This document shows, one piece after another, positions 1-58,200 of a stretch of DNA of 64,000 bases. Every line of letters begins with the position of its first letter. Position 1 is the first letter of the stretch. The stretch covers positions 143,520-207,519 of the forward strand of contig JALMLS010000594.1 of assembly GCA_038496445.1 (NCBI GenBank), given 5' to 3'. A model generated the notes under the pieces. It was not told the DNA's origin, ran no database searches, and was given only the letters and a program-made list of their open reading frames with translations. A program made the translations under genes and the position numbers. The DNA comes from Trichosphaerium sp. ATCC 40318. Taxonomy: Eukaryota > Protista > Tubulinea.

Positions 1-3000
1 CAATTCAAGCGCTCTGGAGAGGAAAGAAAGCGCGTACCCTAGTATCTCGTATAAAGGCCGCTACTACTATCCAAACAGCCTACAGAGGGTATGCTGCACG
101 CAAGAGGCTTGCTACGTTAAAGAGCATCGTCAAAATCCAAGTACGAAAGAGAAAGATCAAGACGAAACTCTGACATTTCTACTTTTTAGTCATTGATTCG
201 TATGACCAAAGAACGCAATGATTTTGTTAAATCAAGAAGCTCTATCGTTTGTATTCAGAGTCTTGCTCGTGGTAATGCTGCCAGGCAATCAACTAAGGAG
301 TTGCGTGCCTCTATCAAGATTACTGCGTTCATGCGTATGGTTGTTGCTAGACGTCAGTTTATCCGCTCGAAGAATGCTTCAATCAAGATTCAATCTATTT
401 GGAGAATGCATAGTGCTAAGAAGTCGTACACATCAACAAGAGAAAGTATTGTACTCTTACAGAGCGCTTTCAGACGTGCAACACAAATGCAGCAACTTGA
501 GAAAGCAGTACAAGCTGCCACAACTATTCAAGTATGGTTTTTCTTTTTTTTTAGTTATTATTTTCCTTTTGTGCTTATGTTTTGTCTCCAGTCTATCGTT
601 AGAGGCTTTGCTGCAAAGAAACGTTATATCACTGCTCGCAAGAATATCATCCGTGCACAATCTGTTGTCCGTAGGCATCAAGCTCAATCTAAATACAACA
701 CCTTGCGCCAGTCTACAATCAAAGTTCAAGTAAGTTTTTTTTGCCTGTTCAGCCTTTTTTGCACTTTTTCTTTCTTCTGTTGCTAAATTCTTTCTTTTAC
801 AGGCATTGTGGCGTAGCGTTCTAGCTCGTAAACGAACATCTAGAATGAAGAGTGAGATTAGAGCTGCAACAATGATACAATCACTTGTTCGCATGCACCA
901 ACGTCGTTCTGAATACAATGCTCTTCGTGGAAGCGCAATCAAAATACAAGTACGACTTTTACAGCCACAAGAGATCTTTTACTGTGTTCTGACTATTGTA
1001 TAGGCTGTATGGCGTATGTCTTCTCAGAAGAAAGCGTATACTACTCTGAAGGCTGGTGCTATTAAGATCCAATCTATTTGGAAGATGACTGTTCAAAAAC
1101 GTGACTATAAAAATCTTATCAATGCAACAATCAAATTGCAATCTCTTTGGAGAGGAAAACGTGCACGTGCTTTTGTTTCAAAAATCAAAGCTGTAACAAT
1201 TATTCAATCATTATGGCGTGGTAGACAAGGTAGATCAAGCTTCCTTGCGCTCAAAAAGTCAGCAACAAAGATACAAGTAAGTATTTAGTTTTTATCTCTT
1301 CTTCTTTGTTTTTTTTGATGTCTTTGACTTACTCATCAACAAGGCTACTTGGCGCATGGTACAAGAAAGAAGGACGTACCAAAAGCAGAGAAAGTGTGCT
1401 GTTAAGCTTCAAGCTTTCTGGCGTATGTGGGCTGAGAGACGTGACTTTAATGAACTTAAGACTGTGATGATATTGGCTCAGTCTTTATGGCGTGGTGTTG
1501 CTGCAAGAAAACATGTTAAGAAACTTCGTGCTGCTATTAAAATTCAGTCGATTTTCCGCATGGCTAAGCAACGCTCGTTGTATAAGAACCTTAAATCATC
1601 AGCTATTACAGTACAGAAGCTATGGAGAGGTAAGATGGCCAGAAAAGAAGCTTTGCGTTTGCGTTCTGCCATCACCATTCAGGTTCGTTTTTCTTTCTTA
1701 TTTTTTAAGTATTTCACCTGTTGCTTGTTTGTTGTTCCTTATTGACCTCTAATAATAGTCTACATGGCGTATGGTAAAGCAGAAGAGGCAGTACACCAAA
1801 GAGAAATCGAGTGCTGTTAAGCTTCAAGCGTTCTGGCGCATGTGCTCTGAAAAACGTAACTTTCAAGTTTTACGAAAGTCTGCAGTCATTGTACAGTCAC
1901 TATGGCGTGGTATCCGTGCGAGAAAGTTTGCCTCAAAGATCCGTGCTATCATTACCGTACAAGCATTATGGAGAGGCAAGAAAGCTAGACAACATGTCAA
2001 AGAAATTAGAGCAGCAATCAAAATCCAATCTGTTTTCCGCATGGTCAAGGAAAAACGTTCGTTCAACAAGATAAAATCATCTGCTATTACAATACAAGTA
2101 CGTTATTAAAATAAGAGCCAAAAAAGGGTGACTCTCTTGGTCGTGAAAGCGAAAAACTTTTTTTTTTTGGGCTTTTATTTTTGACTTTTGTGCTGATGAT
2201 TTTCTTCTTAGGCTGCTTGTCGTATGATGTCACAACGTTCTCGTTTTAATACTCTTAAAGCTGGCGCTATAAAGGGTCAATCCCTATGGCGTATGATACG
2301 CCAACAGCGCTCTTTCCTTGCGTTGAAAGAAGGTGCTATAAAGGCACAGTCTTTGTTTAGAGGAATAAAAGCAAGACGTGATTACAAGCGATTACGTGCT
2401 GCTATCACTATCCAACGTTTCGCTAGAGGATCGTTGGCTAGAAAAGCATACAAACAAGATGTTGAGAAGGTCAAAAAAGCCCAAGCTACTGTCAGAAGGT
2501 TTTTGGCTCAAAAACAATATGCAAGATTAAGAGCTTCTATTGTCCTTCAAACACATGTACGTCACATGATCCTTTATTGTTTGTACTTGATTTACACGCA
2601 TGTATCCTTACACATTTGTTCAGGTACGAGCATTTAACGCTTCTCAAGAGCTCAAGAGAGGTGTTAATGCGGCTGCCAAGATTCAAGCTGCTTGGCGTGG
2701 TCACGTTGCCAGAAATCATGTTGAATCTATCAAGGCTGCAGCTGTTGTGATTCAGAAGGTATGGCGTGGACGTCAAGCCAGAAGATTTGCTGCCAAATTG
2801 AGAGCTGTTATTTTCATCCAGGTATGTTTTCTCTTTTTTGGAGCTTCGCGCAGCGACATCTTTGCTTACTCTTCTTTCTAGTCTCAGAGACGTATGGTTG
2901 TAGCCAGGAGAGCTTACCTAAAGCTTCGTTCTGCTACTGTCAAGATTCAAGCACAGTGGAGGATGCAAAAGGAAAAGAAAGCATTCAGAGTTAAACAAAA

Positions 3001-5279
3001 CGCTGCCATCAAGATCCAATCTGTTGCACGTATGGCTCAAGAACGTGCTAGATTTACTACTCTAAAATCTTCGGCTATCACATTGCAAGCCTTGTGGAGA
3101 GGCAAGGAAGCTAGAAAACAAGCTATTTACCTCAGAGCTGCGATTAAGATTCAGGTACTTTTTTTTTTTGACATTTTTTTCTTGCTTTTTTCTTAGAAAA
3201 ACAACTTGTTGTTAACGTATCTCTTTTTTAGTCTGCTTGGCGTATGGTTTCTGAAAAGCGTCGATATGAGGCACTCAAGAGCGCTACAATCAAAGCACAA
3301 GCGCTTATCCGTGGAAAGATCCAAAAGCGTTCTTTCACTGAGAAGAAAAAAGCAACGATTGCAATTCAAACTGCTTGGCGTGCAAACAGAGCTCGTGCTC
3401 TTCTTGCAAGGATGAAAGCTGCTGTGAAGATCCAATCATTATGGCGTATGTCCTCACAAAGGACTCAATTCCTAGCTCTTAAAAAGGCAGCAACAGCTGC
3501 TCAGAGTCTATGGAGAGGACGTAATGCTCGTGTTCATGTCACTCAAATAAGATCTGCTATTAAGATACAAGTAAGTCAGAGGAAGAAACTACTTTTTTTT
3601 TTCATTCTTGTTTTGGTTGGAAGTGAGTGAGCTTGTGTGCTAATGTTGTATTTCTGTAGTCTGTTGTACGTATGGTACAATGCAGGAAATCGTTTGTAGA
3701 AAAGAAGGATGCCTGTGTTACATTCCAACGTATTTTCCGTGGAAAACAAGCAAGAGAACAAGTTGCTAGACTCCGTGCTGCCATTAAGGTTCAATCAGTT
3801 TTCCGTATGTACAAAGCAAAGATGATCTTGGCTCAATTACGTCGTGAACATCATGAACGTCAGCAACACAATGCTGCAACTCTTATACAGTCAATGGTAC
3901 GCCTATTAGTACTATAAAATCGAAGTTTTGGCTAATAATAATTCAGATACGTCAACGTAATGTCGCCTTCAATGTTTGTGTTAACGTGAATCAAATTGCA
4001 AAATGCCAAGCTTTCTTTCGTGGATTCTTGGTTCGAAAACAACTCAAAGAAACTCGCCGAGCAGTATCTCTAGCTCAAGCCCTATGGCGTGGAAAGATTG
4101 CACGCACTCGTGTTGCAAAGCTTAAGGCAGCAAAGGTCATCCTTACTCGATACAGAGCTATTAAGGCCAGAAAAGAATTTCTTTCTTTGAAACGAGCAAC
4201 AGTTTTGATTCAAGCAAGATTCAGAGGTAACAAAGTACGCGATTCTTATGCCCATATTCGTGCACAAAGACAAGAATCTGCTGCCTTGAAGATACAGAGT
4301 CTTGTGAGAAGACATGCTGCATACAATCGTGCACAACGTATAGAGCCTTCAGCTGTTAAGATACAGGTGAGTCTTATTTTTTTCTTTATTTTTTCTGATT
4401 CTTGTCCGTTTTTCTCTTCTGTTCTTTTGTACTAAGTTTAATAATAGTCGTTATGGCGTGGATATGTATCTAGAAAACGTACAACAAAGAAGATTCAAGA
4501 TATTCGCGTTCGCCTTGCAAAAACACGTCAGGAGTTTTCAGCGAATAAAACACTTGGATACAGAACAAAACAAGCACTTCATACTCTATTGAAATCAAAG
4601 CAATTGACACCAATCAGACGTGCCTTGAGCCTACTTGGTACGTTTAACACTCAGAAAGTGTATGAATCTATGTATAGTTGTACTGACGCCTTGTTTTCGT
4701 AGATCTTTCGACCAGATATTCACCTCTTTGCGCATCGTATTGTGTTCAAATCAACTGCGTTGATATCATCCTTGATCTCTTAACTCGCCTTAACCGCTCT
4801 GCTCCTCATCTTAGTATCTTAACTCTTGGTCTTAATGTACTACTCAACTTGTCTCTTTACCCAGCTACATCTAGTGCTGTGTTCTCGAGCAATTTGTGTG
4901 TCACTACACTAATGACTGTCATGACGAAGTATAAAGACCAAAATGAAGTTTTCAGAGTTGCTGCACAACTCTTCTATGTACTCCTATCTTTTTGTCCTGC
5001 GAGGATGGAAAAGCTTCGCTCAAGTGTATATGGAGGTCGATGGAATCACAAAGCAATCGTACAGGTACGTTATCTTGATGATGAGTTTTCTGAACTTTTT
5101 TGATTTATGAGGGGTTGATTGTTGACTTGTTTTTTTTCTAGCAATTACAAGCTACCAAGAGGATGATGGTAAAACGTTTTGGTATGCAAAAGAAAGCACG
5201 AAAGCCTGTTAATATGCTCACGTCTACAAAACGTGCTATAAGCCAATTAGACTCACTTCTTGGTGTTCTTGTAAAGTAA
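1..5279 (+). CDS. ASPM: ASPM/Asp-like protein, 3' part (very long IQ-motif array plus C-terminal ARM/HEAT-like region); 5' end lies outside the window
   Basis: Dozens of IQxxWRG/IQxxxRM motifs across multiple exons. The post-IQ region (KTLGYRTKQALHTLLKSKQL...LTRLNRSAPHL...KYKDQNEVFRVAAQL) resembles the ASPM C-terminus. The last exon ends LLGVLVK-TAA at 5277-5279. Confidence 0.85.
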
Positions 5280-7408: not shown

Positions 7409-8420
7409 CTATAACTCAAAGTCTAGTTGATGTAAAGCCCATATATCATCATAAGAGGGGGTGGGCCCAGATGACCAGCCACTGTTTATAGATAAATCAT
7501 CATAAAAGTCAAGCCCTGATGAATCAGTGTTTGGAGAGAAAGGATATCCACTTGTGAAGAATACTATACCAGGAATTATCACGTCTTCAGTCACAAAAGT
7601 ATTATGTGCTATCAAAGTATGAATACCTTTCAATACCTTAACCCCATCATCACTAACTTTGGTATGACTAACATAAAGAGTATGTACACCGACCAACGCT
7701 TTAATACCTTCATCAGTAACCCTAGTACCTGTAATATTAACCTCATGTGCACCAGCTAATTCCTTGATGCCCTCATCAGTTATTTTGTAGCAATACGACA
7801 AGTCAATAGTGTGTACACCAGCCAACGCTTTAACACCTTCATCAGAGAACGTGTTACATCTACCCAAGTTTATAGTATGCACACCAGCAAGAAACTTGAG
7901 TCCTTCATCAGTAACAAATGAACTCCTTAAGTCGACAGTATGAATACCACCCAATGTCATAATACTAGCATCAGATGGTGCAGCTTCGCTAAGATCAATT
8001 GAATGTAATCTACAGCACTCGTAATCGACATCTTCTCCAAATAGACCTTCAATACCTGATGTTTTAAATCCAGCAAGAACACAGATAATATCATCCCCAC
8101 GGTCGTTGTCTTGTAGAAAGAAATGTTAGAATGATTAGATGATGTGATAGACAGGTGTTGTACCAACAATGTTATTATCTAGGGTTAGGACTTTAACTGC
8201 AGTCTTCGTCTTTCGTGCTTCAGAGAACATATTGTTGAATAGGTACGCTTGAGCTAGTGTTCTTATTATCACTGTATTGTACCCAACGATGTTATGAATG
8301 ATAGAGCAAAGGTGTCTACAACTTTGTGACACTGAGAAGCGGGTTTTTGTCGTATTTTCAAGTATTTTACTCAAAATCTCAATAGGGAGCTCCAGTAAGT
8401 TTGTAGGTCTATGTTGCGTA
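7409..8420 (-). CDS. F-box/LRR protein (AGVHTI..VTDEG repeat family); start uncertain
   Basis: F-box LLELPIEILSKIL...SQSCRHL. One GT-AG intron at about 8162-8111 restores the frame into the LRRs (LAGVHTINLGRCNTFSDEGVKA). Confidence 0.8.
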
Positions 8421-8654
8421 TGAAAAAATATTTGGGGACAAATTAACGTACGAATGGACGTTATATCTTTCTGACATGTTGTAAACGCCTTTGGTGACTT
8501 TTTTGGGTTAAAATTGAAGCCAAGTGAGGGTCTGTTAACTACACGTGGTGTTATCACGTGATTCTAGAATGGAAAATCCGAAAATAATTTTGATAGCAAT
8601 CACAACTTGCTTGTGTTATACTGAGAATAGCAACTGACTGTACTTGGTTTATCA

Positions 8655-16352: not shown

Positions 16353-18093
16353 TTACCCAATGAATGGAGTATCATCCAATTTGAATGATTCGATGTCAAG
16401 AATGAAAGGCTTTATCATACCTTCATCTACAAGCGTACTAGTAACAGCACGATTGTATGCATTCTCAACAAAACCAAAATAGAAAATACAATGCCAAAAA
16501 TTACTTGGTGTTAAAGCTACATCTTTCAAACAGAAAGATGAAGGAGTAACATCTTCAGAACTTTCAAATTCTTCCAAAACATCATCACGTGATTCCTTGT
16601 ATAATATCTTATCTACAACTACTTCATCTTCATTCCCAGGTAACCACCATGTGACTAATAGTATTATAAGACGAAATGAAGATGACTTTGATGAAGTGGG
16701 TAGTTGTCATACCTGTGAATGATTCATTTTTTTTTGTTTCATGAAAACTTTTTTCGATTTTGAAACACTTTTTCTTTGCTGCAATCATTCTATTCTCTGC
16801 CTCTTTCAACTTGTTCAAGCATTCCTCACATGTTTCATCTAATTACTAGTATGAGGAGAGTGTAAAAAAAAAGTGTGTTAGGAGTACCAGCACCAAAAGA
16901 AATAGGTGACTTATAAGTTCCATGTTTACATTCTTCGGTATCAGAAGAATCATCTGATCCTTCAGATTCCGAATCAGAGTCATCATCACTGAAGTCATTT
17001 AGATCATCATATTGCTCGTTTATAGCCTCTACACATTTTTTGATCATATCACGTGCAACTTTTGATGATGGACAGAGCTCTAAAGCTTTCTCAAAAGCTA
17101 CTTTCGCAAAAACATATTTTGCTGGTATCATCTCAAAACATGCTATTCCCTTCCTCAAGTGACCCTTCAAAGAAAATCAGCATATGCATAAAACACTCCA
17201 TAGTAAAGTGTTATATTACCTTTACGAAATCAGGTGCAATTTCAACACAATTAGACGCATCACGAAGAGCACGAGCAAGAAAAATTAAAGAACCAAATTC
17301 ATATTGTTTTGACTCTTTGTTCAACTCTATAAGAGTAGCTGCTCTGTTGCTAAGCAATACATGCATCATATCCATGTGCTGCTTAGGGTTTTTCTCAGCA
17401 ATATCAATAGCACGTGTGTACAAGGCGTTGGCTTCAAGGAACTGTTTTTTTCCATATTTTTCGTTTCCGAGTTTTTTAAGCCTTAGTACTTCGTTTTTTG
17501 TCTTCTTAAGCGTCTTGAAGGTAGGTCTGAGTAGTAGATAAGCATAAAAAGCACTTTAGAGCGTTTTTTAGTAAAATTTACATAATGTGTTTTCGGTTAC
17601 ATTTGTAGTCGTAAGAGCATCCATTCGCTGATTTATATGCTATACAGCGTTGAGATGGTATTTTGTGGGCGTGTCTACATTTTTCGCCATACTTGCAGCA
17701 TCCAGCCAGAAAGTATTGGCATAGTTTCTGTTGGCAATATGAGGACGAGAATCAAGAAACGGCGCGTACACGATGAGACTTGTTTGAAGCCCATGGGTGT
17801 TCTTCTTCAGTAAAATCAAGCATTGATAATACCAAAGGGCTATGCAGAGGGTGGGGGCACGGTTCTGCTTCATTAGAGTCCTTGTAATAGTCTTCTAACT
17901 TATCGAGCATCATACTGAAGCTTTCATCGGTAACACCGCCACCATATGGTCGGTCTTCTTTGTCCCAGAACATGTATTGTAACGGATCGACAAACGCGCT
18001 TGAGATAATGTCATTGACAGTTTCATCGCCTGAGTAGCCGTAATCGCCGTAGTCTGAATCATCAGAGTCGTAGTAAGAGTCGTAGTAGCTCAT
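16353..18093 (-). CDS. Tandem CCCH zinc finger plus TPR protein with acidic tracts
   Basis: A spliced exon (about 17728-17583) gives CQYFLAGCCKYGEKCRHAH and CIAYKSANGCSYDYKCNRKH. TPR follows (LKKLGNEKYGKKQFLEANALYTRAI...SNRAA...APDFVKGHLRKG...FEKALELCP). Confidence 0.8.
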
Positions 18094-18435
18094 TGTGTGT
18101 TTAGAATAATAACCGCTATTTTTTTGTGATTATTGAGCTATTGACTTAACGACATTTTATTCGAACGCACCTTACATACAGAATCACGTGATTTGTATTT
18201 TAGAGATGACAATACAACCGTGTTAGTAGGCAATTTAAAAAAAAGGTTGTGGAGAGCTTTGCACGAACGGACGGAAACTGTGAATTACAAACAGAATAAA
18301 CATTGTTACCACTCATTTTCAAGTGCGAACCTGACTGTTTATTGGTTAGATTCGTTTCAACTCATTAAGTAAACGTTTTGCTACTTTCACAATGTTGCCT
18401 ATTGCGTCCTTATCTCTTGGCAACTATCGTTGGTA

Positions 18436-20621
18436 ATGTCCATTGCGCACTCCAACATTCACCCTTCGAGGATTGTGTCTTTTGATACCCTTATCCACCA
18501 ACTTGATAGGAGTGTAGAGAACAAAGGTAAACTACTATTGACGTACATAGATTCTTACAAGCTTCATAGAAATTAGTTTTAGAAAAGATGAGGAGACTGG
18601 TTTAGAAGTTTACCGCTACAACTTTGGTTCTTTATCTCCTAATAAGCCACAAGCTGTAGGAAACTTGTGTAGAGGATTAGTAATTCATAGGGTCTCTCAG
18701 AGAGTTGTCGCACATGGGTTTCCAAAATTCTTTCACTATGCCTCAGAAGTACAACCAGAGGTCAGCGATGAAGTGTTGGAAGTTACCGAGAAATTTGACG
18801 GTACAGCACTAGTTTTGGGTTGTTATCACGTGGGAATAACTTCTACGCCATAGGGTCTATGATCGTAGCTTTTGTTTGGAAAGGGAGGCTCGAGACTACA
18901 ACAAAAGCAAATATGGCTTCAGATCAAGCGCTGTGGGCTAAACAGTGGCTTAGTAACAATGTAAATGTTGCTTTGTTTCAGAGCGGCTATAGTTACGTGT
19001 TTGAGGCGATCTACAAGGATAATACAGTAATTGTTGAGTACAATTTTGAAGGCACGTGATTAACTTACTCTTTTTAAACTAAGTGTTTAAATCTTCAGGA
19101 TGTGTACTGCTTGCCATATACAACAATAAAGGAAAAGAACTTGGACTTGCCGAAGTACAAATCGTACTATTTCATTCTTAATATATTCATATCTCAACAG
19201 GTTTCAGCGACTGCCAAAACACTTGGCGTTAAATGTGTCGAGACGATAGAAATGCGTTTTGAGGAACTCCTTTGTAAGCTAGAGGACGACGACATTGACA
19301 CCGAAGGTATGCCGATTTTCATTTAAAACTCGGACTTTTTTATTTGGGCTAAGTACTCTTGTATTGAATACTTTACGCCCACGATTCCTACAAAGCAAAC
19401 GCTAGATAAAAGAAAAGTTTGGACAAGAGCATAAAATTATGAGTTTTCTTAGGGACGATTTGGTCTATTACGTACCATTTCTTGGTACAACAAAAGGCTT
19501 TAAGTGATTATAGGCCTCTCTTTTCCAAAAAATGTTCCCGTTTTCAATGAAACCCGACATGTTTCTTTGTTCATTACAAAACATCTAATCATTACTGCAG
19601 GATATGTTGTTAAGATTAAGAGCGTCAATACAAGACTCAAGTTGGTAAAATCTGAATGGAAGAGAGCTAGTAATATAGCGCGGAAAATATACCCTTTATA
19701 CATTTGGCAGTTGATGAGATACAAAAAAATTGAATCATTCCGCTCTTCAATTCGAAATTCAATGCACTTGAAGGAATTTAATGCGATTTATAGTGCCCTG
19801 GATACTCAGCTATCTAACCTTCTATTAAAACATAGCGGTACGAGAGTAGTGAAGATATACTTAGAATTATTGTCAATACCATACTGCAATATCGAAGATA
19901 AGAAATATCCTATTGTTGGGCTCCAAGGTGCAATATCTGTAGCTCTTCAAGAGTTAAAGTACATTTTCTCCCTGTGTTACATCACATTAAACGAAGATAG
20001 GAAGCTTCTGCCTTCTCGCTTTAGTGGACACATTCGTTCAGCAATTACTGTAAGTACTAAACAACAATTTAAATGCTAAAAACGGATTAGCATTTAGCTT
20101 TACAACAAGTTCTTTACGAAAATATAGAATCAATGAAACATTGCGAGTATAGAATAAGAGAATCCTGGCGGCTAGACTATGAATCAGCGGTAGCAAGTGT
20201 TAAAGAAGTGAGGGGCTTGCTCATTGATAGAATAGCTGAAGTCTATAAAAAGTGGGTTACAGAAAATAAACGAGCATACCTGGAAGATATCAAGCCAATG
20301 AATAATGAGATCAAAGGATACACTCCTTCTCAGAACTTCAAACAAGCGTGGGCGAAATCGTGGCCATACTTGACTGAACCTAGTTTCAGTTCTGACCTCA
20401 TGTTTCCTCCCGAAATCATGTTGGAGATATTTAATAATCTAGAACCAATCAACATAGCAAAGTCTAGGCAAGTATGTCATCACTGGGATAATCTCTTAAA
20501 CCTCGAGTCGTATAGAATGACAATGGATGAGTACAAAGAAGACCTTCGTCAAGCACAGTATGGATATTGGCGGAAACACACATCTTCATACGGTAGTGAT
20601 ACTGAACTCTATGATTTCTAA
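18436..20621 (+). CDS. T4 Rnl1-like ATP-dependent RNA ligase with C-terminal F-box
   Basis: CRGLVI..VVAHGFPKFFHY, motif I TEKFDGS, motif III FEAIY, motif IV EGYVV, motif V RLKLVK. Splices in frame (last acceptor at 20090) into MFPPEIMLEIFNNLEPINIAKSRQVCHHWDNLL. Confidence 0.85.
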
Positions 20622-21073: not shown

Positions 21074-22593
21074 ATGATCCCATCACCACTAAAGAAGGTA
21101 ATTGCAACCGTTTTCATCAAAAAAAAACTCCTAAACTCGTTCTAACTTGTACCCATCAATAGCGTAATAATGCATCTACTACACAGTTTCATACCCAATT
21201 ACTAGAACTGCCAATGGAGTTACTTCTCGATATAATCGATCTAGACTCAGAAATCAATCTTAAATTTCCGCTTCTATCAAAATCAACGGCGATGTCAACA
21301 AGGTTCGATTGTGATCTTAAGAAACATGGTAAATGGTTGAAATACAAAAAACATTGTGAGAAGGGATCACCAGATGGATCACAAATCGTATGTCAGGAAT
21401 ATTGGAAAAATGGTAAACAACACGGAGAATACAAGTCATGGTACACCAACGGAAAAGTGTCTGTTCAATGTAACTTTGTAAACAATGTCTGGGAAGGGCA
21501 ATACAACTGTTGGGACCCTAATGGGCAATTGAATGAACAGTCTTATTATGTCAAAGGACAATACCATGGAGAGTTAAAACGTTGGTTTGAAAACGGACAA
21601 TTGAGAGAGTTATGGACGTATGTCAAAGATATAAAACATGGCATCGTCAAGAGCTGGCACTTCAATGGACATATAGAAAAGCAAGGAACATATGTTAATG
21701 ATGAACTATCTGGAGAGTATAAGGAGTGGTATGATAATGGAAAACTGGAGGTAGAGTGTACATACAAGAATGATAGACGTGTTGGAATGTACAGGGAATG
21801 GCATCCGAATGGAAAACTAGAAATGGAATGTACCTACGTCAATGGTAGACAACAAGGACACTACACCTCGTGGCATGATAATGGTCTAGTTTGTTGTCAA
21901 TGTATTCATGTTGATGGTCAAAGAGAAGGAGAATGCGAGGTGTGGTATGAAAACGGCAAAATATGTGCACTGTGCACGTGTGTAAACGGAAAGAAATACG
22001 GAGAGTACAAACAATGGTTTGACAACGGACAACAGCAAATGCAGTGTAACTATATTGATGACAATCTACACGGAGAGTTTACAGAGTGGTATGAAAACGG
22101 AGTAATAGCTGTTAATTGTTATTACATCAATGGTAAACAATATGGAGAGCGAAAGGAGTGGCACGAAAACGGCGAAAAGGAGCTACAGCACACTCTTGTA
22201 AATGACAAATACAATGGTGAATACATGGCTTGGTACGACAATGGACAGCTGTACAAGCAAGCCACCTATACCAATGGTATCTTAAACGGAACCTATAACA
22301 AGTACTATCGCAATGGGCATTCATGGAAGCAATGTACTTATGTCAATGGAGCCAAACACGGTGATTACAAGGAGTGGCATGGAAATGGAGTGTTGCTTTG
22401 CCAGTGTAATTTTACACATGGATTGAAAAATGGAGAGTACAGGCAATGGTATGATAATGGTCAATCATGGATACAATGTTATTGTGTTAATGGCAAACGA
22501 GAGGGTGAGTATAAGAGATGGTACTACAGTGGCAAATTGGGAAAACATTGTACCTTCAATGAAGGTAATCGAGTTGTATTCAAAATACGCTGA
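21074..22593 (+). CDS. F-box plus MORN-variant (YwqK/MORN_2-type) repeat protein
   Basis: Exon 1 MIPSPLKK (21074-21097), intron 21098-21162, then ...QLLELPMELLLDII...FPLLSK (F-box-like). About 16 tandem 24-aa repeats follow (HGEYKEWYDNGQL...CxYVNG). Confidence 0.8.
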
Positions 22594-30271: not shown

Positions 30272-31408
30272 TTGATGGAAACAGCGATAAAACAAGTTAA
30301 TCTTATTGAAGAGCTTCCACCAGAGACATTAACACTTACTCTTCGTTATTTAAATAGAAAACAGCGTATCACAGCTTCATCAGTGTCTCACCTGTTTAAT
30401 AACGTTATTCGTCACAATATTGGCTTTGAAAAGATCAAATTGACAGAATCATCAGATTGTCACGTGTTAAAAGGCAGTCCGTTGCTTAAGAACACTACAA
30501 TTTCTTCTTTTCGGCTTAAAGTATCAGCAAGTGACTTGGCTTGTCTTTGTGGTGTCCACACGATATCTCTGGGCTCTTCAAACGTCACTGATGAAGGTGT
30601 ACTTTCTTTATTACAACATGGACAACACAGTGTTCATACAATCAACCTGGCATGTACAGATATCACAGATGTTTCATTGAAGGCACTTAGCAGCACCGTA
30701 CACACGATTAACATTGCCAGATGCAAGAACATTAGTGATGAAGGTGTTAAAGCACTTAATCATGTTCACCGATTAATACTTTGTAAACCACGTGAGTCTT
30801 GGTTCAAATATCTCGCCAACATCCACACACTTAAGATTTACAAAGCAGATTCCTTTACAGATGAAGCAGCTAGATTATTAACTAACGTCAAAGTCTTACA
30901 TCTTTCTTATTGTGACACAGTTACAGACAATGGATTAAAAGATCTGGTCAATCTTGTTCGTCTTGATATTAGAACATGTGATAGTATCAATTACTCATGC
31001 CTACATAGTTTGATAAACCTTAAATATCTCACAATAAGGGAGCTTTTAAAGGAAATAACTGATGACAAATTGAAGTATTTGACAAATCTGGAAAGTCTTG
31101 TTCTTTTAAAATGTGGTAGTATAACTGATGAAGGAATGAAGCACTTGGTTAACCTTAAACAACTACTTCTTTGGAGCTGTGTTAAGATAAGAAACTCAGG
31201 ATTGAAACACTTGATCAACTTAGAATACCTCATTCTTATGCACTGCAAGAATATAACAAATGATTGTTTGAAACATTTGATATCTCTTAAATGTATTAGG
31301 ATCTCTGGTGAAAGCCGTATTACAAATGAATGTACTGATAAATTGGGTGTTACTATGAATAGGCGTGACACTGTTGATGTATATGAACCTTTTCGATATT
31401 TTAACTGA
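30272..31408 (+). CDS. F-box/LRR protein (intronless)
   Basis: LIEELPPETLTLTLRYL...SSVSHLF followed by about 11 LRRs (ITDEGMKHLVNLKQLLL). Confidence 0.85.
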   Translation: MMETAIKQVNLIEELPPETLTLTLRYLNRKQRITASSVSHLFNNVIRHNIGFEKIKLTESSDCHVLKGSPLLKNTTISSFRLKVSASDLACLCGVHTISLGSSNVTDEGVLSLLQHGQHSVHTINLACTDITDVSLKALSSTVHTINIARCKNISDEGVKALNHVHRLILCKPRESWFKYLANIHTLKIYKADSFTDEAARLLTNVKVLHLSYCDTVTDNGLKDLVNLVRLDIRTCDSINYSCLHSLINLKYLTIRELLKEITDDKLKYLTNLESLVLLKCGSITDEGMKHLVNLKQLLLWSCVKIRNSGLKHLINLEYLILMHCKNITNDCLKHLISLKCIRISGESRITNECTDKLGVTMNRRDTVDVYEPFRYFN

Positions 31409-37861: not shown

Positions 37862-40170
37862 CTACTTTGGTGGCGTTTCAAATACCCATTGTTGATTCTG
37901 ATTATCTGATCTGGAAGACCACAAATACACGTTCCTAAATTAAAACGAATAAACAAGATGAAACAATATTGAAAAGGACATACTGGTTGTTTGATCCTCC
38001 ACCATTACCATCAATAGAGTAAGCAACATTACGTTTTTTTAATCTATATGTACTTCCAGATACATGAGACTTCTCCCAATGTTGATTAACATTATCTTGG
38101 TTACACCTGTGGAGCTTCACATTCCTGAAAAAAAAAAGTTAGAAAAGATGTGATATTAAGTACTTATTGAAGAATATGTACGCACTGTCCATTGCTACCA
38201 CCAGTTTTACCATCAAGGCAATAGTTTGTATAACGCTTACGGTAGATATAATATCCGTTGCTGTGTTGTGTTTCGACCCAATGTTGATTTTCATTTTTTT
38301 TGTTGTAGTTGTAAAGGTACACATTGTTGTCGTTGGCGTTAGGCTGCTTTTGAGTTGTCAAAGCATACCCCAGTGAATTTTTCTTTCGAAGGATATATAG
38401 CTTTTCATCATTAATAGAGCTAAGGCAATCAATACTTCCAAGTTTTGTACATCCACTGGCTTGACTTTTCCTCGAAAACTTTAACCATTTGTTCAAGCTA
38501 CACAAATATCGTGAGCGCTGTGACATTTAGACGATAGCCAATAATACGTACTTCTCATCTGGCATGCTATCCCTCATTATACCTGCGTTGTCAGGGTCAT
38601 GGTTCATATTTATAAGGTGTCCAATTTCGTGTGCAGTGAGGATGGTACGTTTACGAGTATCACCCATTTCTTTCACTTCGGCTTGAAAATTTGATCCACA
38701 AACACCACCTACCCATGCGCTTCCTAATAAGGTTCCAGCACTACAGTCATGATATAACACAGCTATTGGTGGTCGGGGATTCGAATAGTAACTGGTCGCC
38801 CAAGTATCAAAATCACTATGGACATCATTTCTTCTCATACACTGCCAACCGGCAGCTAAAAAAAAGTGGTTAGGTAATTAGTATTGTGTTGAGTAGTTTG
38901 TACAGTAGTCATCCCGATCCTTCATTATAAGCATCTCTGATACAACAAGTTCCACGTTCTTGTTTCGTTAGTACAACAGTTTACTTGTTTCAAAGGAAAT
39001 ACTTACCAGTTCTAGGTTATATATTGCGTTCACGTTGTGAATGTCTAAACAAGACTGGTTAGCAAAGCAAATAATATTAACTTCAAAAACTATCCCAGTT
39101 CATACTGTTGGTGACATAATTTACTGAATCGTCAACTCCTCGGTTATCATACATACTCTCATCAACAACCACTACCTATCGACTGTGTTAGTACCACAAA
39201 ACACCAATACAATTCGTGTACCATACGGAGAACTTCTAAGGATGAAGGACAACCTGTAGGTGGAGGATCTAATGGTAGTGTATCTCCCATAGGGTACACT
39301 CTTAAACAAAAAAAAAGTTAGTCTTTCCTGTGACAAAGAGAGAAACTACAAACCTTCTTGAACGTTTTGAACGAGTACGTTTACGTCTCTCTGACTTAAT
39401 CATGTCATTACAAACTCCGCAGCCAAGTGATTCTTCGTGTTGTAGAATATTGCGCCTTTTAGAGCAATGAGATTTCGGACAATGTACGGAAATGGAACAA
39501 CGGACAAAAGGCTTCTTACCTTAGAATCACGTGTGTGCCGGACCCAAGTTTTTCCACATGGTGTGGTGCCATGAAATCTATGTGCCTACGAAAAAGAAGT
39601 TGTCAGTCAACAGCTTCAAATAGGAAAAAACTTACTTTTTCGCTGGCTCAATTACAAGCATCTCATCATTTACGAACAGAATACCTTCTATCGTGCCATC
39701 TTTATGAGCCATAAACCGGAAGCGATAGCTATCGTTGATAGACTTGAAGGTTGTTGATGGAATAGGAAGGTACTTTGAACTGTTTCCTGAGCTTAAGATA
39801 ATCTGCAATGTCAGGTTAGAATAAACCAATACAAAACAAAATCACCCACCCTTGAATCGAACGTGAACGGCGACGCTTTGATACATTCAACAGTCAGCGA
39901 ACCATTTTGTTTGTGTACTGTTAGTACATGAACTCCTTCAGCGCTACGTTTCGGAGACAGTGATAAATCAACTACAAACAAAACAATCAGCTTTCGGTGG
40001 TTTTGACGAGACAACTTAAATCATACCCGACGTAACAACTTCAAAGTCCTCTACGTTATCCCAGTACTGCTTGTCATGGCATAAAACAGCGGTAGCCAAA
40101 AATACTAATTGAGGTAAGTCTCATGATTCGTTACCATAGAGGCAGTACCAACTACACAAAGCTTCCACAT
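37862..40170 (-). CDS. Secreted M12B (ADAM/reprolysin-like) metalloprotease with C-terminal ricin-B lectin domain
   Basis: Signal peptide and prodomain, LGSAWVGGVC, zinc motif AHEIGHLINMNHD plus Met-turn GIM. QxW repeats NENQHW, NVNQHW, NQNQQW. Confidence 0.85.
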
Positions 40171-45038: not shown

Positions 45039-46638
45039 ATGTCAGAAACAAAAGAAAAGGCAACTATGGAGAAGCTCCGAGGTGATAAACTCAATACAAA
45101 CATGACATACAATTACCTTGGTAACAGCGGCATTAAAGTGTCTTCAATATGCATGGGTAAGCCGTTTACAACCTTTTTACTTTCTTTTGACATCTGTCAA
45201 CCGAATAACGCTTTAAAAGGCGCTATGACGTTTGGAAAGATTGACAGCGAACACTGGCTACCTACAGTCACTACAGAAGAGAGTTTTGCTCTCATGGACA
45301 AGTTTGTAGAAGCAGGTGGTAACTTTATCGACACAGCCAACGTCTACGGCATGGGAGAAAGCGAGAGAGTCGGTACGTTGTTAAACTGACGAGAAAACCC
45401 AAAAACAACCAAAACGGTTTTTTCTGTTTGTTCGCTTTAAAAGCCTCTAATTCATCAACTAATCGTTACAACAGTCGGTAAATGGATGAAAGAAAGGAAA
45501 AACCGCAGTGAAATCGTTCTAGCTACAAAAGGTATGAGCCAATAAACTCAGTCGGAAAAACTTTTCACCCATTTTATCATTTTTATTTTCTTTATTTTTT
45601 GACGTTGTTTAATGTCACTTTAGGGTACTTCCGGTTTGGAAAAGGTCCTAACAATGCTGGATATAATAGAGGATTTATTATGAGAAGTGTGGATCAATCA
45701 TTGGAGCGTCTCCAAACCAGTTACATTGACTTGTACCAAGTACGGGGGTTTTTTGAAACAAAAAATTAAACAATGTTTGTATTTTCTTATGTTCTAATAG
45801 CTTCACTCGTTTGATCCTGGCACGCCTATCCGCGAACTCATGACAACATTAAACGACTTGGTTCGTCAAGGAAAAATCCTTTACATTGGTATCTCAAACT
45901 GGCCGTCATGGGCTATCCAACAAGCTCAATGTATCGCCAAATACGAAAATATGACTCGTATGTCCACTTTGTTTCAACGTTTTTGTTGACATCTATCAAA
46001 GGTTTTGTCTCCCTACAAGCGCAATACAATCTGTTGGCTAGAGGACCTGAATGGGAGATGTTCCCTGTGTGCCAGGTACATTTGTCATTTCATAGTTGAA
46101 GTTGAACGAATTAAACTAACTTTTCTTCACAGGCAAACAACATGGCATACTTGCCTTGGAGTCCTTTGAAGGGCGGTTGGTTATCTGGTCGCTTTGACCG
46201 TGACTCCAAAAAACCAGAAGAAGGACGTGTAGCTTGGGCAGAGAAAGCAGGTTGGTCAGAGACTGACTGGGGTAGTCTTGCCAATGAAGAGTAGGCGTTT
46301 AGTTTTTAGGTAAATCCAGTTTTTACTGACTTTGTTTTGTTAGCACGTGGAAAGTTATTGATGTCTTGAAAGAAATATCAACCGAAACTAAACGCCCTGT
46401 TGCTCAAATAGCACTTCGTTGGATCATGCAACGCCCAGGTGTTACATCAACAATCATTGGTGCCCGTAAAATGAAGCATTTGATCGATAACCTTGGCACT
46501 GTTGAGTTTTCATTGACAGAAGAACAAATGACTCGTTTGAATACTGTATCTACTCTAAAAGCACCATACCCATACAATCTGCTCGCTACATTCCCAGCAC
46601 GTGATGGCAGAGCAAGAGAAGGTAGAACAGACTTTTAG
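45039..46638 (+). CDS. Aldo/keto reductase
   Basis: [76 protein letters not shown]. The D/Y/K/H catalytic tetrad is present. Confidence 0.93.
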
Positions 46639-47145
46639 ATAAAAATAAAAATATATTTCATGTGTAGTTGTTGTACTTGTATCTCGAAAAGGCAAACGCG
46701 TTTATATTCAAAAAACAATAATACCATACTGATAATAACATGGTTTTGTTGACACATACAACAGGTAATAACTAAGCAAAGGTATAAGCAGTAATTAAAT
46801 AGCCCCAATAGTAACATTTTTATTTAACAAACATGTTTGAAATGTACACTAATTTTATCCTTTCGTTGTTCATGTATTGTGTACGTTCTTCGACTTTATA
46901 TAAAAAATAAAAAAAAAGATTAGAATACAACGGTCTCTAAAATAAGTCATTCCAGTACTTTTCAGGGCATCCACGCATAAGATATTACAGCAATTTACCA
47001 CAATATATATTCAGTGAAATAGCCCGTTGACCAAGCAAGAATACGCTTCAATCTGAACGAAAAAATTTTCAACATTTCCAAATTTCGAAAAGAAGCTTCC
47101 ACAGGCCAAAATAAAAAGTGTCAGCGGTGCCAGGGCAAGCAAAAC

Positions 47146-47217
47146 AGTCCCCGACGGGACTTGAACCCGCAATCCCCAGATCCGAAGACTGGTGCCATAC
47201 CATTAGGCCACGAAGAC
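47146..47217 (-). tRNA. tRNA-Arg(TCG)
   Basis: GTCTTCG..CGGGGAC acceptor stem, D arm TGGCCTAATGGTATGGC, anticodon loop CT-TCG-GA, T arm GCGGG-TTCAAGT-CCCGT, downstream TTTT. Confidence 0.93.
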
Positions 47218-48135
47218 TTTAACGCTGTGAAGAAACTTGATGAGTACTGACCCGATCAATTGTCATGTTGACCATCACTGACCGTGTTTCAATGTCCATC
47301 TGTAGGCTTAATGGCGTTTGTGTTATCTATTGATACTCCTATACTGTTTAGGGGAATAAAAAAAGTGATTTTGGGGTTTTCAACTTTGTCGCGTTGTTGA
47401 ACCGTCAAAAATGAGTATTGGTTATCCGACGTTGTTTTATCTCAAGTGAACTACCTATTTCATCCATAGGCGGCTAATATCATTCTTTTTTGGACTGGTC
47501 TTTTTGCCAAACGCTCAAAATACGCGAGTAGCGCTTGGTGATAACCTCTTTGGTGTAGATTAATACCGTATCGTTTTAACGTATAATTATGTTTAGTGTG
47601 CGCCTAATAGTTACGAATGCGGTCCATATCACGAAACAAGGCGCCTACAAAGATTTGAGTCCACCTTCTAACGTTTGTCACTTCTCGCATTTGCAAAAAA
47701 GCTTTTTTGCGAGTTTTCAGCACACGCTTAACTCCCTTACAGAACTTACGCAATTATACCCTCCTTCCATATCTTTGGAGTCAACTGACGCTAAATTAAT
47801 TTCTTGAAACTCGTAGCTGAAGTTATGTTTGCGTCCTTTTTGTATAGCTCAATAAAACAACCTCGTAAATACAAACCATACCTTAGTGACTGACCGCATC
47901 TGTATCTATGTGTTCATTTATTCCTTCTTTCATCATTATTGTAGTGGTGGGAAGTTTTGGTTTTCGAATGACTTCAGTTTTTCTACTTGACTTTTGTACA
48001 AATTGCGTGCTGTCAACTAATTGTAAGGAAATTATTTCCTGTTCTACCTCATTGTCAATGGCGAAATTTTGTTGGCTCAACCACCTCCTCTTGACTTGTT
48101 CTACCACGGCCACTTTAGTAGTACGCATTGAGCAC

Positions 48136-54354: not shown

Positions 54355-56100
54355 ATGACAACCAAAATAGAGAGTGGAGAATTAGGAACTTGGCTAGAAA
54401 CTCTAGCACAATGCAAATATCTACCAGAGCAGAATTTGAAGCGCTTATGCGACTTGGTACGTCATACGCGAGTTTCAGTATATAGTGGCGTATTTTTGCG
54501 CTGTTTTAGAGCGTATACAATAAGTTACCGGCTCTTTTTTCGCCTTGTTGCAGATTAGTAAAACGGGCCACAATTCTTATGTAGTGCTTAGGTAAAAGAA
54601 CTACTACTCGAAGAGTCCAATGTGCAACCTGTTAGTTCTCCAGTGACGATCTGTGGCGACATCCACGGCCAATTTTACGACTTAATGGAACTGTTTAGAA
54701 CCGGCGGTTCTCCTCCAGACACTAATTACATTTTTATGGTGCGTTTAAATTCAGACTTCGGCATTTTGGCAAAATACTTTAATTCTTTTTTGCTTCGCAT
54801 TCTACTAGCGCATTCGTAATTGCTTTATTAAACTATATTTGCTCCGAAATAGCGTCAAAACAGAATTGATAAAAAAAAAAAAAACGTTATTCTTGTTCTC
54901 TCACTTTTAGAAATTACATTGGATGCACCACTATCCTATTTCTTGACCTTTTCTTTGCGAGATATTAACAAATCTTCTTCAGGGCGATTTCGTCGATCGT
55001 GGTTACTATTCCCTTGAAACATTCACCTACCTACTATGTCTTAAGGCTAGGTAAGCAGAAGAAACCCATTTGAGCGGGTTTTTCGCAAACTTCGATTTTT
55101 GAACCTCACTTTTTCGGTAGATACCCTGATAAGGTTACTCTATTGCGTGGTAATCACGAAAGTAGACAAATTACTCAAGTATACGGGTTTTACGATGAAT
55201 GCCAACAAAAATACGGCAACGCCAACCCTTGGAAGTACTGCACTCAGGTTTTTGATCTCCTCACCATTGCAGCTGTACGTTTGGATTTATTTATTGTCGT
55301 CAACACTAAGAAAACCTGAAAAAGGAAATTATTGCAATTCGGGACCGCTTTTTTATGTTTTTGTCGATTTCTTGCTTTGTTTCACTCTTTTTGACTTTTT
55401 CTTGTAGTTAATTGATGGACGTATCTTGTGTGTCCATGGTGGTCTATCTCCAGGTGCGTCGCTGTACCTCTAATTTTTTTTTGGAGGATAAACGCGGTTT
55501 TTTTGATAATTGGTTTTTTTTTGCTTACTTTTTTGGTATTTTAGACGTTAGAACAATGGATCAAATTAGAACCATCCCACGTAACCAAGAAATCCCTCAT
55601 GAAGGTGCTTTCTGCGATTTGATGTGGTCCGATCCAGATGATATTGAAACCTGGCATGTATCCCCTAGAGGAGCTGGTTGGTTGTTTGGTCATAGAGTAA
55701 CTAGTGAGGTACGTTAGCAGAAGCATGCAACAGATAGAGATTATTTTTGATCCATTTTTTTTGTTAATTTGATGCTGACTTGTTTTCTCGTTTAGTTTGT
55801 TCGCATTAATAAGTTGAATATAATTTGCCGTGCGCATCAATTGGTGCAAGAAGGTTACAAGTATCAATTTGAGTCCCAATTGGTTACAGTTTGGTCTGCT
55901 CCTAATTATTGCTATCGGTATGTTGTTTGGATTCTTTCTTTTTTTTTGTTTATTTTGTGCTTATTTTCTTTAGTTGTGGTAACGTTGCCAGTATCCTTGC
56001 TCTTGATGAGAACCTTAATCGCGACTTTAAGATCTTTCATGCTGTCCCTGACTCTGATCGTGTTATTCCACCACGTCAACCAATGCCATACTTTCTCTAA
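54355..56100 (+). CDS. PPP6C: Serine/threonine protein phosphatase 6 catalytic subunit (Sit4-like)
   Basis: [87 protein letters not shown]-terminal PYFL. Confidence 0.93.
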
Positions 56101-56431
56101 ACATGAAATAAGAAAAAGAGACAGTTTATTGTCATTTTTCACCCTTAGTAATCTCCTGTTAATCAATTAATTAGTAAAAGCGATCCTTTTAATATAACTA
56201 CACGTCTACGCTTTCTGGGTTCTTCATGTGTTTACTTTTATAACCTTCGGTTGTTGCTGTTTTGATGATAAAAACAAAAGATGTAGGTGCTCTCTATGTT
56301 GTAACTAAGTTTTTACTTTTTTTTTTTTGCAACACGTTTTGGGTTTTGAATGGGTTTGCTTTAGTACAAATCACGTGTCTTTTCTATTCTTGTTTGGGTT
56401 GTTTTTGTTTTGTTTTTTTTTGGTTTCTTCG

Positions 56432-58200
56432 TTAAAATCCTGAGTATTGAGTGTCGCCTGTTTTGTAGTAGTTGTAAGTTGGTGCTTGGTATTGTCTATC
56501 ATATACTGCTGGTTGTTGTGTTGTTCGTTGGGGAGTAAGATATGGTGAACTAGCGCGTGATGGAGTTGTTTGATAAGACGCTTGGTACGGTGAACGTCTT
56601 GGGACTGTCCCTGGCGTATGATAAGGTGATTGTGCCGTAGGTGTGAGATAAGGAGAGCGACTAGCCATCAATGATGGTGTATGGTATGGTGATGATGCTA
56701 TTGGAGTACGTGGTAGACTTGCAGCGCTTGGGGTATGGTAAGGAGACTTTGAAACACCATTTGAATACGGAGATTGAGAAAGTATACTTGGATAAGGTGA
56801 CCGAGAAATCCCGTTTGGACGTGGAGATTTAGGTATTGTACTTGGATAAGGTGACTGAGTAATTCTAGTTGGGCGTGGAGATTTAGGTATTGTACTTGGA
56901 TACGGTGATTGAGAAACTCCGTTTGGATATGGTGATTGAGAGTTTCTGCTTAGATACGGTGATTGAGAATCTCTGCTTGGATATGGAGATTGTATTTGTA
57001 ATGGACTTCGTTCTAGGTCTTGTGTTTGTACTGGTAGCTCTGTTTTTATCGTTTGTTCAAGTGGTTGTTCTGTTTCTTGCTCTTGTTCTTGACCTTGGTC
57101 TTGTTCTTCGACTTCTTGTGATATTGGTTCTATTATCGTTTCGGGTTGTTGTTCTTGGTGTTTTACTTGTGTGTTAACCTTTTCTAGTTTTTCTTGAAGT
57201 AAGTTTGCTGTGTTTAGAAGCGTTTGACATTTCTCAAAGAGTTCGTCATTTTCTACTTCTTTCATTTGCATGAGGTTATCCAGAGTCTTTATTTAGGTGT
57301 GAGAAATAGTCACGTGTATGATAGTTTAACGTACATCTGCACGTGATTTTTGTCGTGCGAATTTCATGTCGTTTAAGTATGTTTCTTGGGTCATTGTTTT
57401 TGTTAGTTCATCGACTTGTAGTTCTAACGCATCTATTCTACTTTTACTTTGTTTTTCAAGAGCGTTTAGCTTAGATCTAGTGACCATATGTTCTGCTTTT
57501 TCTTGGTGAAGATCTTCGAGTAGTTTTGACTCATTCTGGACGCACGTGTTAGCGACGATTTACAAAAAGACGGTTCTTCCTCAAGAAAAACAGTTTTAAT
57601 TTTTTTTTGCATTTCCTTTACCTCCTTGTAGCTCTCTAGTAAATTCTGGGCCTCGAGGTGCTTCAATTCGATATTATTAAACGTCTCTTGTCGCGCTTGA
57701 AGTTTTCGTAACTAAACAGTCTGTAAGAGAGGAGAAAAAAAAAACCTTCAAAGAGATACATTATCGCGTTATGGTTTTATCATATCAAATAATTTTAGCG
57801 TACTTCTGATTCCATCTGACCTATTTTACGCTTATCTACTGTCTCTTGTACATTCTTCTCTTCTAAATATACCTCACTTTAATACAAAGTGTTTGGGTAA
57901 CATTACCTACTAGTTTTTGAAGCACTTCCTCATAAGCAATGATAATATTTTTAAACTTCAAGTTTGTTTCTTGTTCTCTCCTTAGTACATCTTCGTAGTC
58001 CATTTGTATTATCTGTAGCTCATTCATAGCCTTTTAAAAAAATCAGTAAACTATTAAAAATAACACGTGATACTCTTAAATACTAAAATATACAACCTCT
58101 TCGATCACGTGATCGATCTTACCTGATGATAAATTTCTTTTTTTAATTTTGCGATATAGTCTCCTGCTGATAGCTCCGATGAACTGAAAGGTAATTCCAT
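56432..58200 (-). CDS. TACC-domain-like coiled-coil protein with C-terminal Ser/Pro/Tyr repeats (start uncertain)
   Basis: FKNIIIAYEEVLQKLV, NLLESYKENESKL and LMQMKEVENDELFEKCQTLL match recalled TACC-domain patterns (IVAEYEKTI; EGFRKNEEVL; KNKEIEELTKICDELI). Confidence 0.6.
56540..57005 (-). repeat. Coding tandem repeat, about 27 nt/9 aa, (Q/K/R)SPY(P/H) units
   Basis: QSPYPSRDS QSPYLSRNS QSPYPNGVS QSPYPSTIP... in ORF 56432-57271. Confidence 0.8.

Follow-up and report, generated by a model that had tools for sequence, protein, structure and literature searches.

A predicted gene of Trichosphaerium sp. ATCC 40318 joins an Rnl1-type RNA ligase to a C-terminal F-box

We analyzed a 64,000-nucleotide (nt) stretch of contig JALMLS010000594.1 from the microbial eukaryote Trichosphaerium sp. 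ATCC 40318 (assembly GCA_038496445.1, positions 143,520 to 207,519 of the forward strand), referred to here as the window. At positions 18436 to 20621 (+ strand) it holds one gene whose predicted product of 556 amino acids (aa) combines a complete RNA ligase of the T4 Rnl1 family with a C-terminal F-box. Rnl1-type ligases are phage counterdefense enzymes and, when fused to end-healing domains, tRNA-splicing ligases; the F-box is the plug that joins a target-binding module to the SCF (Skp1-Cullin1-F-box) ubiquitin ligase. Judged from the predicted protein, the combination is a new domain architecture, represented by a single case. The best explanation as a whole, to which we give an even chance, is that an acquired Rnl1 ligase was extended by an F-box, with the ligase module favored as the target-recognition part of an SCF.

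The predicted product is a complete Rnl1-family ligase

The sequence-only reading of this DNA had described an intron-containing gene for a T4 Rnl1-type enzyme, and both points were borne out. Three-frame translation combined with comparison with relatives gave a seven-exon model that runs from the ATG at 18436 to the TAA stop at 20619 to 20621. Two of the exons match PHROG 562, the T4 gp63 RNA ligase family, in colinear order (exon 2, 1e-6, profile positions 29 to 107; exon 3, 8e-10, profile positions 107 to 175), and a tblastn search with exon 3 returned 123 phage records, the 20 listed all being annotated as RNA ligase. The spliced protein scored 113.6 bits over aa 21 to 304 against a profile of 120 PF09511 proteins plus T4 Rnl1 and 213.9 bits against a profile of the six nearest bacterial and phage relatives. 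By pairwise BLAST it matched a Streptomyces phage ligase with an E value of 3e-20 and T4 Rnl1 with an E value of 7e-5.

Pfam models were run on the exon pieces. Exon 2 scored 19.8 bits against RNA_lig_T4_1 (PF09511), under the cutoff because the query is a fragment, and no kinase or cyclic phosphodiesterase domain was found by Pfam in any exon piece. T4 Rnl1 was the sole solved relative in a profile search of PDB sequences, which did not recover Trl1; single-exon searches of PDB sequences gave no match for the ligase pieces, and a tblastn search of phages with exon 6 likewise gave none.

IMG/VR and one genome for each prokaryotic species were scanned by pattern, which provided 160 loci that were confirmed against exon 3. 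The top full-length matches came from two Tepidisphaerales metagenome-assembled genomes (MAGs; L087 and L096), from Acetobacteraceae and Obscuribacterales MAGs, and from two viral contigs. The nearest relative, L087, is 29% identical over 352 aa (E = 3e-39), with a BLAST alignment that reaches aa 354 of the window protein, and lies above the Pfam cutoff for PF09511. Two profile searches of a 5.8-billion-protein collection were made, from each of which the best 120 of about 3,800 matches were taken; bacterial and phage ligases dominated. The relatives form a large bacterial clade of proteins of 366 to 415 aa whose Pfam domains are solely PF09511 and, in some, the related PF09414. Among the best 120 of about 3,800 matches, the highest identities between the window protein and clade members were 32 to 34%.

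In a quick maximum-likelihood tree, the window protein falls within an 11-row group with bacterial and viral relatives (Shimodaira-Hasegawa-like approximate likelihood ratio test, 92). Its branch measures 2.72 where the median is 0.41, and the exact sister group is not secure because this branch is so long. At 428 to 2472 of one viral contig (L032; IMG/VR 2548877000_000017), a PNKP gene, encoding a HAD phosphatase plus a kinase, ends exactly at the start of the ligase gene. The clade includes heal-and-seal pairs of the T4 style. PADLOC returned nothing for the exon pieces, for the nearest relative, or for two ORFs (open reading frames) beside a related viral ligase.

The helical C-terminal domain is also homologous to that of the relatives: alignment continues to about aa 354 and resumes in a tail motif at aa 448 to 462. 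The predicted product is thus a complete Rnl1-family RNA ligase, with the N subdomain, the nucleotidyltransferase domain, the helical C-terminal domain, and the tail motif of the clade.

The ligase tail and the F-box share one reading frame

The motif RPxGNxLxGYxPS, located near the C terminus, is common to the six best relatives and occurs in 95 of the 120 clade members, 9 to 12 aa from the end of the protein. The window protein carries a match to it, KPMNNEIKGYTPSQN (20292 to 20336, + strand; aa 448 to 462), in exon 7; the F-box follows 22 residues downstream in the same uninterrupted ORF. This tail aligns to the clade profile separately from the main match and colinear with it (profile positions 351 to 380 of 386). 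A hidden Markov model (HMM) of the tail alone scored 15.4 bits on exon 7, a score that none of 20,000 shuffles reached (maximum, 8.8).

Because the tail motif and the F-box lie in a single ORF, the DNA itself shows ligase and F-box sequence to be physically continuous, and the fusion does not depend solely on the predicted 41-nt intron before exon 7. Since the tail motif is in exon 7, even the ancestral ligase on its own stays whole only if 20050 to 20090 is removed. The junction between 20050 and 20091 that the sequence-only reading had placed there was recovered here too: with this intron kept in, translation stops at 20077 to 20079, and with it spliced out, the tail motif is back in frame. 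The earlier view that the F-box exon belongs to one unit with the ligase and is not a separate gene agrees with the shared ORF.

Between the aligned part of the C-terminal domain and the tail motif lies an insertion of about 85 aa (aa 360 to 445) that has no counterpart in the relatives and is predicted to be helical. Past the ligase, the extension comprises about 90 C-terminal residues, including the F-box. The ancestral stop would have stood about 12 residues before the F-box, so the fusion looks like C-terminal read-on rather than intron-mediated exon shuffling.

The C-terminal motif scores as a full F-box

An F-box-like motif had been noticed at about 20394 to 20498. Two Pfam models placed it above their curated cutoffs at 20403 to 20501 (+ strand; aa 485 to 517, residues 105 to 137 of exon 7), namely, F-box-like (PF12937; 28.9 bits, cutoff of 24.3) and F-box (PF00646; 25.4 bits, cutoff of 20.5), within a wider, predicted three-helix unit at 20394 to 20516. 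The best matches of exon 7 in a search of PDB sequences were all F-box proteins (FBXW7, FBXO31, FBXL5, and SKP2), each of them weak. By eye, FPPEIMLEIF...HHWDNLL aligns without gaps to the Skp2 F-box consensus, with the Pro, the hydrophobic ladder, the Val-Cys, and the Trp in place.

An AlphaFold2 model of exon 7 from the single sequence had a predicted local distance difference test (pLDDT) score of 49 and was not used. With an alignment of eight F-box sequences (F-boxes of the window, of MMETSP matches, and of other matches), AlphaFold2 gave three helices with a core pLDDT of 73 to 82, in a model steered by that alignment. Foldseek comparison of this alignment-steered model with the PDB gave 33 matches, about 28 of which were chains from entries of F-box proteins, solved in nearly all cases together with Skp1; KDM2A/B (FBXL11/10) were among them. 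By HMM, the predicted C-terminal motif is a full, canonical F-box, and the fold carries weaker weight.

The sequence-only reading had compared the arrangement with poxvirus PRANC proteins. The C-terminal position bears this out, and the motif does not: no PRANC or ankyrin match was found by Pfam at an E value of ≤10 in any exon piece, and the F-box is a full one.

At least three genes of the window combine an F-box with LRR_6 repeats (7409 to 8557, − strand; 30272 to 31408, + strand; 62530 to 63222, − strand). Their F-boxes form one subtype, LPxE(I/T)L...(S/T)(C/V)(R/S)H(L/F), which lacks the Trp. As this differs from the subtype at the end of the ligase, the ligase F-box is not a recent copy of a neighbor. 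The best relatives of the gene at 30272 to 31408 are marine protist transcripts of MMETSP (40 to 46% identity), with weaker matches that include Willaertia, and the gene at 62530 to 63222 has a 63-nt tandem period at 62606 to 62831, near its LRR_6 match.

The active site is largely preserved

We mapped the residue positions of T4 Rnl1 onto 120 clade members and the window protein. Fifteen of the 17 catalytic or ATP-contact positions defined in T4 are kept, all of them invariant or nearly so in the clade (in T4 numbering, Tyr37, Arg54, Lys75, Phe77, Lys99, Asp101, Gly102, Thr118, Lys119, Glu159, Leu179, Glu227, Gly228, Val230, and Lys240). Motif I is KFDG, containing Lys105, and all 120 clade members share its K, D, and G. 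The residues specific to the N subdomain of Rnl1 are retained as Arg65, Lys83, and Phe85 (Arg54, Lys75, and Phe77 in T4), as are motifs Ia (TK, aa 124 and 125), III (Glu158), and IV (EG, aa 230 and 231). Across the protein, 51 of the 83 clade-invariant columns are kept, at an overall identity of 31%. Judged from these positions, the predicted active site is preferentially preserved, yet not untouched.

Comparison with known ligases and F-box proteins

The window protein shares the fold-defining sequence features of aa 6 to 360 and the tail motif with bacterial and phage Rnl1 ligases (T4 Rnl1/gp63 and those of Tepidisphaeraceae, Phycisphaerales, Bradyrhizobium, and IMG/VR phages), including motifs I, Ia, III, and IV and the Arg, Lys, and Phe of the N subdomain. 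Like T4, the clade pairs a ligase with PNKP in L032. The bacterial and phage proteins are intronless, measure 339 to 415 aa, end 9 to 12 aa past the tail motif, and are 28 to 34% identical to the window protein, whereas the latter has six introns, the insertion of about 85 aa, a deviant motif V, and the F-box extension.

The Trl1/RNL ligases of fungi, plants, and kinetoplastids, in which an Rnl1-like or Rnl6 domain is joined to a kinase and a cyclic phosphodiesterase, are likewise eukaryotic multidomain proteins with an Rnl1-like ligase. Their partner domains, in contrast, act in RNA end healing and are unconnected with ubiquitin, and the window protein is nearer to T4 Rnl1. FBH1 is an F-box DNA helicase; it and KDM2A/B resemble the window protein in coupling an enzyme module to an F-box, and thus the location or target of the enzyme to SCF. 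They differ in that the enzymes are others, the F-box is N-terminal or internal and not C-terminal, and no sequence relation exists outside the F-box. Poxvirus ankyrin-PRANC proteins also place a C-terminal Skp1-docking motif after a target-binding module, but theirs is a shorter form of the F-box for which Pfam has a separate model.

That the fusion was undescribed, as had been supposed, is consistent with limited literature searches, in which no description of an Rnl1 ligase combined with an F-box was found, and with the 240 relatives from the two profile searches. Scans of IMG/VR and JGI metagenomes with exon 2, 3, or 7, which required near-identical 8-mers, gave spurious short matches only.

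Origin of the ligase gene

The coding sequence has a GC content of 39% (38% at third codon positions), the introns one of 34%, and the window one of 37%; the base composition of the gene is host-like, unlike that of the GC-rich relatives. The idea of a domesticated foreign RNA-repair gene fits these data, as the host-like GC content, the six spliceosomal introns, and the very long branch of the ligase gene suggest that it came by an old horizontal transfer from a bacterium or phage. The ligase gene would have been taken up long ago, its base composition would then have drifted toward that of the host while it gained the introns and the insertion in the C-terminal domain, and reading would have been extended beyond the ancestral stop into a segment coding for an F-box.

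Exons and introns

The introns of the ligase gene measure 43, 53, 47, 37, 294, and 41 nt, and five of the six have GT-AG boundaries; intron 3 has GC-AG. Each frame break is closed by one of these introns (37 to 53 nt, and one of 294 nt). The junctions of introns 1, 2, 3, and 5 lie inside ungapped alignment to the clade profile, as expected of real introns in a coding gene and not of a decayed bacterial gene; intron 4 adjoins a short insertion. The short introns (37 to 53 nt) are unusually small. From the sequence, 18436 to 20621 is one nuclear gene of a microbial eukaryote, with predicted junctions.

All features are on the + strand. Exon 1 (18436 to 18526) encodes aa 1 to 31, ending with the first base of codon 31, and covers the N-terminal helix of the Rnl1-specific N subdomain without gaps relative to the N terminus of the clade profile. 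Removal of intron 1 (18527 to 18569; 43 nt, GT-AG) restores the frame at a junction colinear with the relatives. Exon 2 (18570 to 18800; aa 31 to 108) contains Arg65 (T4 R54), Lys83 and Phe85 (T4 K75 and F77), and the KFDG of motif I, in which the predicted AMP-accepting Lys105 maps to 18791 to 18793. Intron 2 (18801 to 18853; 53 nt, GT-AG) splits the Gly108 codon of motif I. The KFDG string noted earlier is present, and the intron behind it had to be corrected to these boundaries: the donor at 18801 is preferred because it alone yields KFDGS, matching the KxDGS of all relatives. A donor at 18819, which gives a 562-aa model, was rejected; it would add six residues in motif I that are present in no relative.

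Exon 3 (18854 to 19051; aa 108 to 174) encodes motif Ia (TK, 18901 to 18906) and motif III (VFEAI, 18997 to 19011). Intron 3 (19052 to 19098; 47 nt, GC-AG, AAG|GCACGT...CAG) is the sole in-frame solution, and its removal produces NFEG|CVLL, a gap-free match to the DFEGLVLL of relatives. Exon 4 (19099 to 19163; aa 174 to 195) is colinear with the clade profile. Intron 4 (19164 to 19200; 37 nt, GT-AG) is placed on the basis of frame restoration and leads into exon 5 (19201 to 19306; aa 196 to 231), the end of which falls in the EG of motif IV. Intron 5 (19307 to 19600; 294 nt, GT-AG) splits the Gly231 codon of that motif, and the joined TEG|YVV matches EGFVV without gaps. The rest of motif IV, the deviant motif V (KLVKSEW, 19639 to 19659), the helical C-terminal domain, and the start of the insertion are encoded by exon 6 (19601 to 20049; aa 231 to 380). 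After intron 6 (20050 to 20090; 41 nt, GTAAGT...AG), exon 7 (20091 to 20621; aa 381 to 556 plus the stop) carries the helical insertion, the ligase tail motif, the F-box, and a tail of 34 aa in a single ORF.

Surrounding genes

The window has a GC content of 37% throughout and few long ORFs, and very short introns interrupt its eukaryotic genes. Ordinary housekeeping content, comprising exons of a PP2A-family (PP6/Sit4-like) phosphatase (55099 to 56170, + strand), an aldo-keto reductase exon (45039 to 45386, + strand), and a tRNA-Arg(TCG) gene (47145 to 47218, − strand), confirms a cellular eukaryotic contig. A Skp1 gene is not part of the window.

Divergent ORF pieces rich in acidic runs of Asp, Ser, and Tyr, with no family match, lie upstream of the ligase gene at 17752 to 18093 and 16835 to 17170 (both − strand); the 342-nt interval at 18094 to 18435 could be a shared promoter. 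An intronless gene for a 459-aa MORN_2 repeat protein (172.6 bits) lies 590 nt downstream of the ligase gene, at 21214 to 22593 (+ strand), and, standing among intron-rich neighbors, could be another foreign acquisition.

A multiexon gene at 1356 to 4435 (+ strand) encodes several IQ calmodulin-binding motifs per ORF piece; six pieces match Pfam IQ (best, 2e-19), some are separated by as little as 26 to 48 nt, and the gene resembles an IQ array of the ASPM/abnormal-spindle type. Two ORF pieces lie side by side at 38164 to 38838 (− strand); an HExxHxxxxxH zinc-site motif marks one, and the other is lectin-like in appearance. When 21 ORFs were scanned together with Pfam, reprolysin-type (M12B) models matched one of them and ricin-B lectin models matched one. 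The two pieces may be one gene for a secreted protease-lectin. A tandem repeat of 27/54/108 nt (62 to 77% matches) at 56739 to 56992 coincides with a strong AT skew (−0.28) at 56 to 58 kb and lies in a 279-aa ORF (56432 to 57271, − strand) for which no Pfam match was found.

Proposed function and alternatives

As in their families, the ligase module would bind ATP and RNA ends, and the F-box would dock the protein on Skp1. If active, the ligase would form Lys105-AMP and then seal breaks between 5′-phosphate and 3′-OH ends, e.g., in nuclease-cut tRNA. We favor a role for the ligase module in target recognition within an SCF ubiquitin ligase, through which whatever occupies broken RNA would be ubiquitylated. 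By analogy with F-box proteins as substrate receptors, with the enzyme-F-box designs of FBH1 and KDM2, and with ankyrin-PRANC proteins, in which docking from the C terminus works, ubiquitylation of proteins at broken RNA by an SCF is a reasonable inference. The SCF coupling, the ubiquitylation at the break, and the other role, as a bait for toxin or viral effectors, that the sequence-only reading put forward are all conjectures of this kind. The fuller proposal, that the acquired RNA-repair ligase is an SCF substrate-recognition subunit through which the ends of broken tRNA or of other RNA, or their nucleases or toxins, are sensed and ubiquitylation follows, seems unlikely as a complete account. 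An equally simple alternative is that docking through the F-box would make the ligase itself a short-lived, SCF-controlled client.

Several observations weigh against an extended ligase serving an SCF in this way. The strings FE, EGYVV, and KLVK that had been read, together with KFDG, as intact ligase motifs are all present, but KLVK is not an intact K-x-K motif V: the window protein has K-L-V-K-S-E-W, compared with K-[LVI]-K-G-x-E-Y in the clade. The first Lys is kept, K242 of T4 is replaced by Val, a Lys at the next position replaces the invariant Gly, and Tyr246 is replaced by Trp. Mutational work from the Shuman laboratory has reportedly found K242 and Y246 to be essential in T4 Rnl1. Both are invariant in an actinophage-type set (121 of 121) and in the clade (120 of 120), with K240 at 121 of 121 and 119 of 120, respectively. 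In the Trl1 ligase, where the motif V lysines have the same role, both touch the ATP alpha-phosphate and are proposed to stabilize the transition state of adenylylation (PMC6379707). Adenylylation by the window protein may be impaired because its motif V departs from the invariant K-x-K-G-x-x-Y; the protein probably still binds ATP and RNA, with an uncertain catalytic rate.

The remaining counterpoints concern the fusion and the F-box. No orthologue, paralogue, or fused relative was found; none of the 240 relatives (the best 120 of about 3,800 matches, twice) is longer than 415 aa or has another domain, and a phmmer search of 1.84 billion representative proteins with exon 6 (150 aa, no length limit) gave no matches, the C-terminal domain being too diverged for a 150-aa piece. 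The Foldseek matches of the F-box are individually weak (best E value, 0.29; root mean square deviation of about 1 to 3 Å over 31 to 39 columns), and the structural support is not independent because the F-box alignment steered the model. The module order, with the target-binding module N-terminal to the F-box, is the reverse of the usual one.

The changes in motif V raise the question of whether the protein is a ligase in fold only. It might have lost efficient catalysis and kept the fold to bind RNA ends or nucleotides and thereby confer specificity on an SCF, as the change of two residues that are invariant in 240 relatives (K to V, with a Lys shifted by one position, and Y to W), the very long branch, and the change of 32 of the 83 clade-invariant columns would suggest. 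We find this doubtful: the nucleophile Lys105, which pseudoenzymes usually lose, is kept along with 14 other catalytic or contact residues, far over the background identity, and the Lys beside the lost one could compensate. The partly degraded active site, the local abundance of F-box genes, and the failure to find a fused orthologue would also suit a young or neutral chimera, formed by chance read-through in an F-box-rich genome and either lacking a selected function or decaying. This is rather improbable given an ORF that is intact across 556 codons and seven exons, with GT/GC-AG boundaries on every intron, and an F-box whose consensus is kept well enough for two curated cutoffs and which is no copy of the neighboring subtype.

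There would be no chimera at all if the locus held two genes, a ligase that stops at 20077 to 20079 and a small F-box protein that begins at the ATG at 20133. The unspliced ligase would then measure 389 aa, near the length of phage Rnl1 proteins, and an ATG-initiated ORF of 162 aa does occupy 20133 to 20621. Its product, however, would bear the tail motif of the ligase clade itself, the gap from stop to ATG is just 53 nt, and the 41-nt interval begins with a consensus GTAAGT donor and resembles the other introns in length, all of which make this division highly improbable.

If the favored reading of an acquired ligase acting in SCF target recognition is true, the protein would physically and directly tie RNA repair to the ubiquitin system; such a wiring of RNA damage or repair to protein degradation would be new, with a logic comparable to that of the F-box DNA helicase FBH1. 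The gene would also exemplify how a foreign gene is rebuilt after transfer into a eukaryote, gaining introns, an insertion, and a new domain, and its altered motif V would offer a natural experiment on how large a share of the ligase active site a reused fold still requires.

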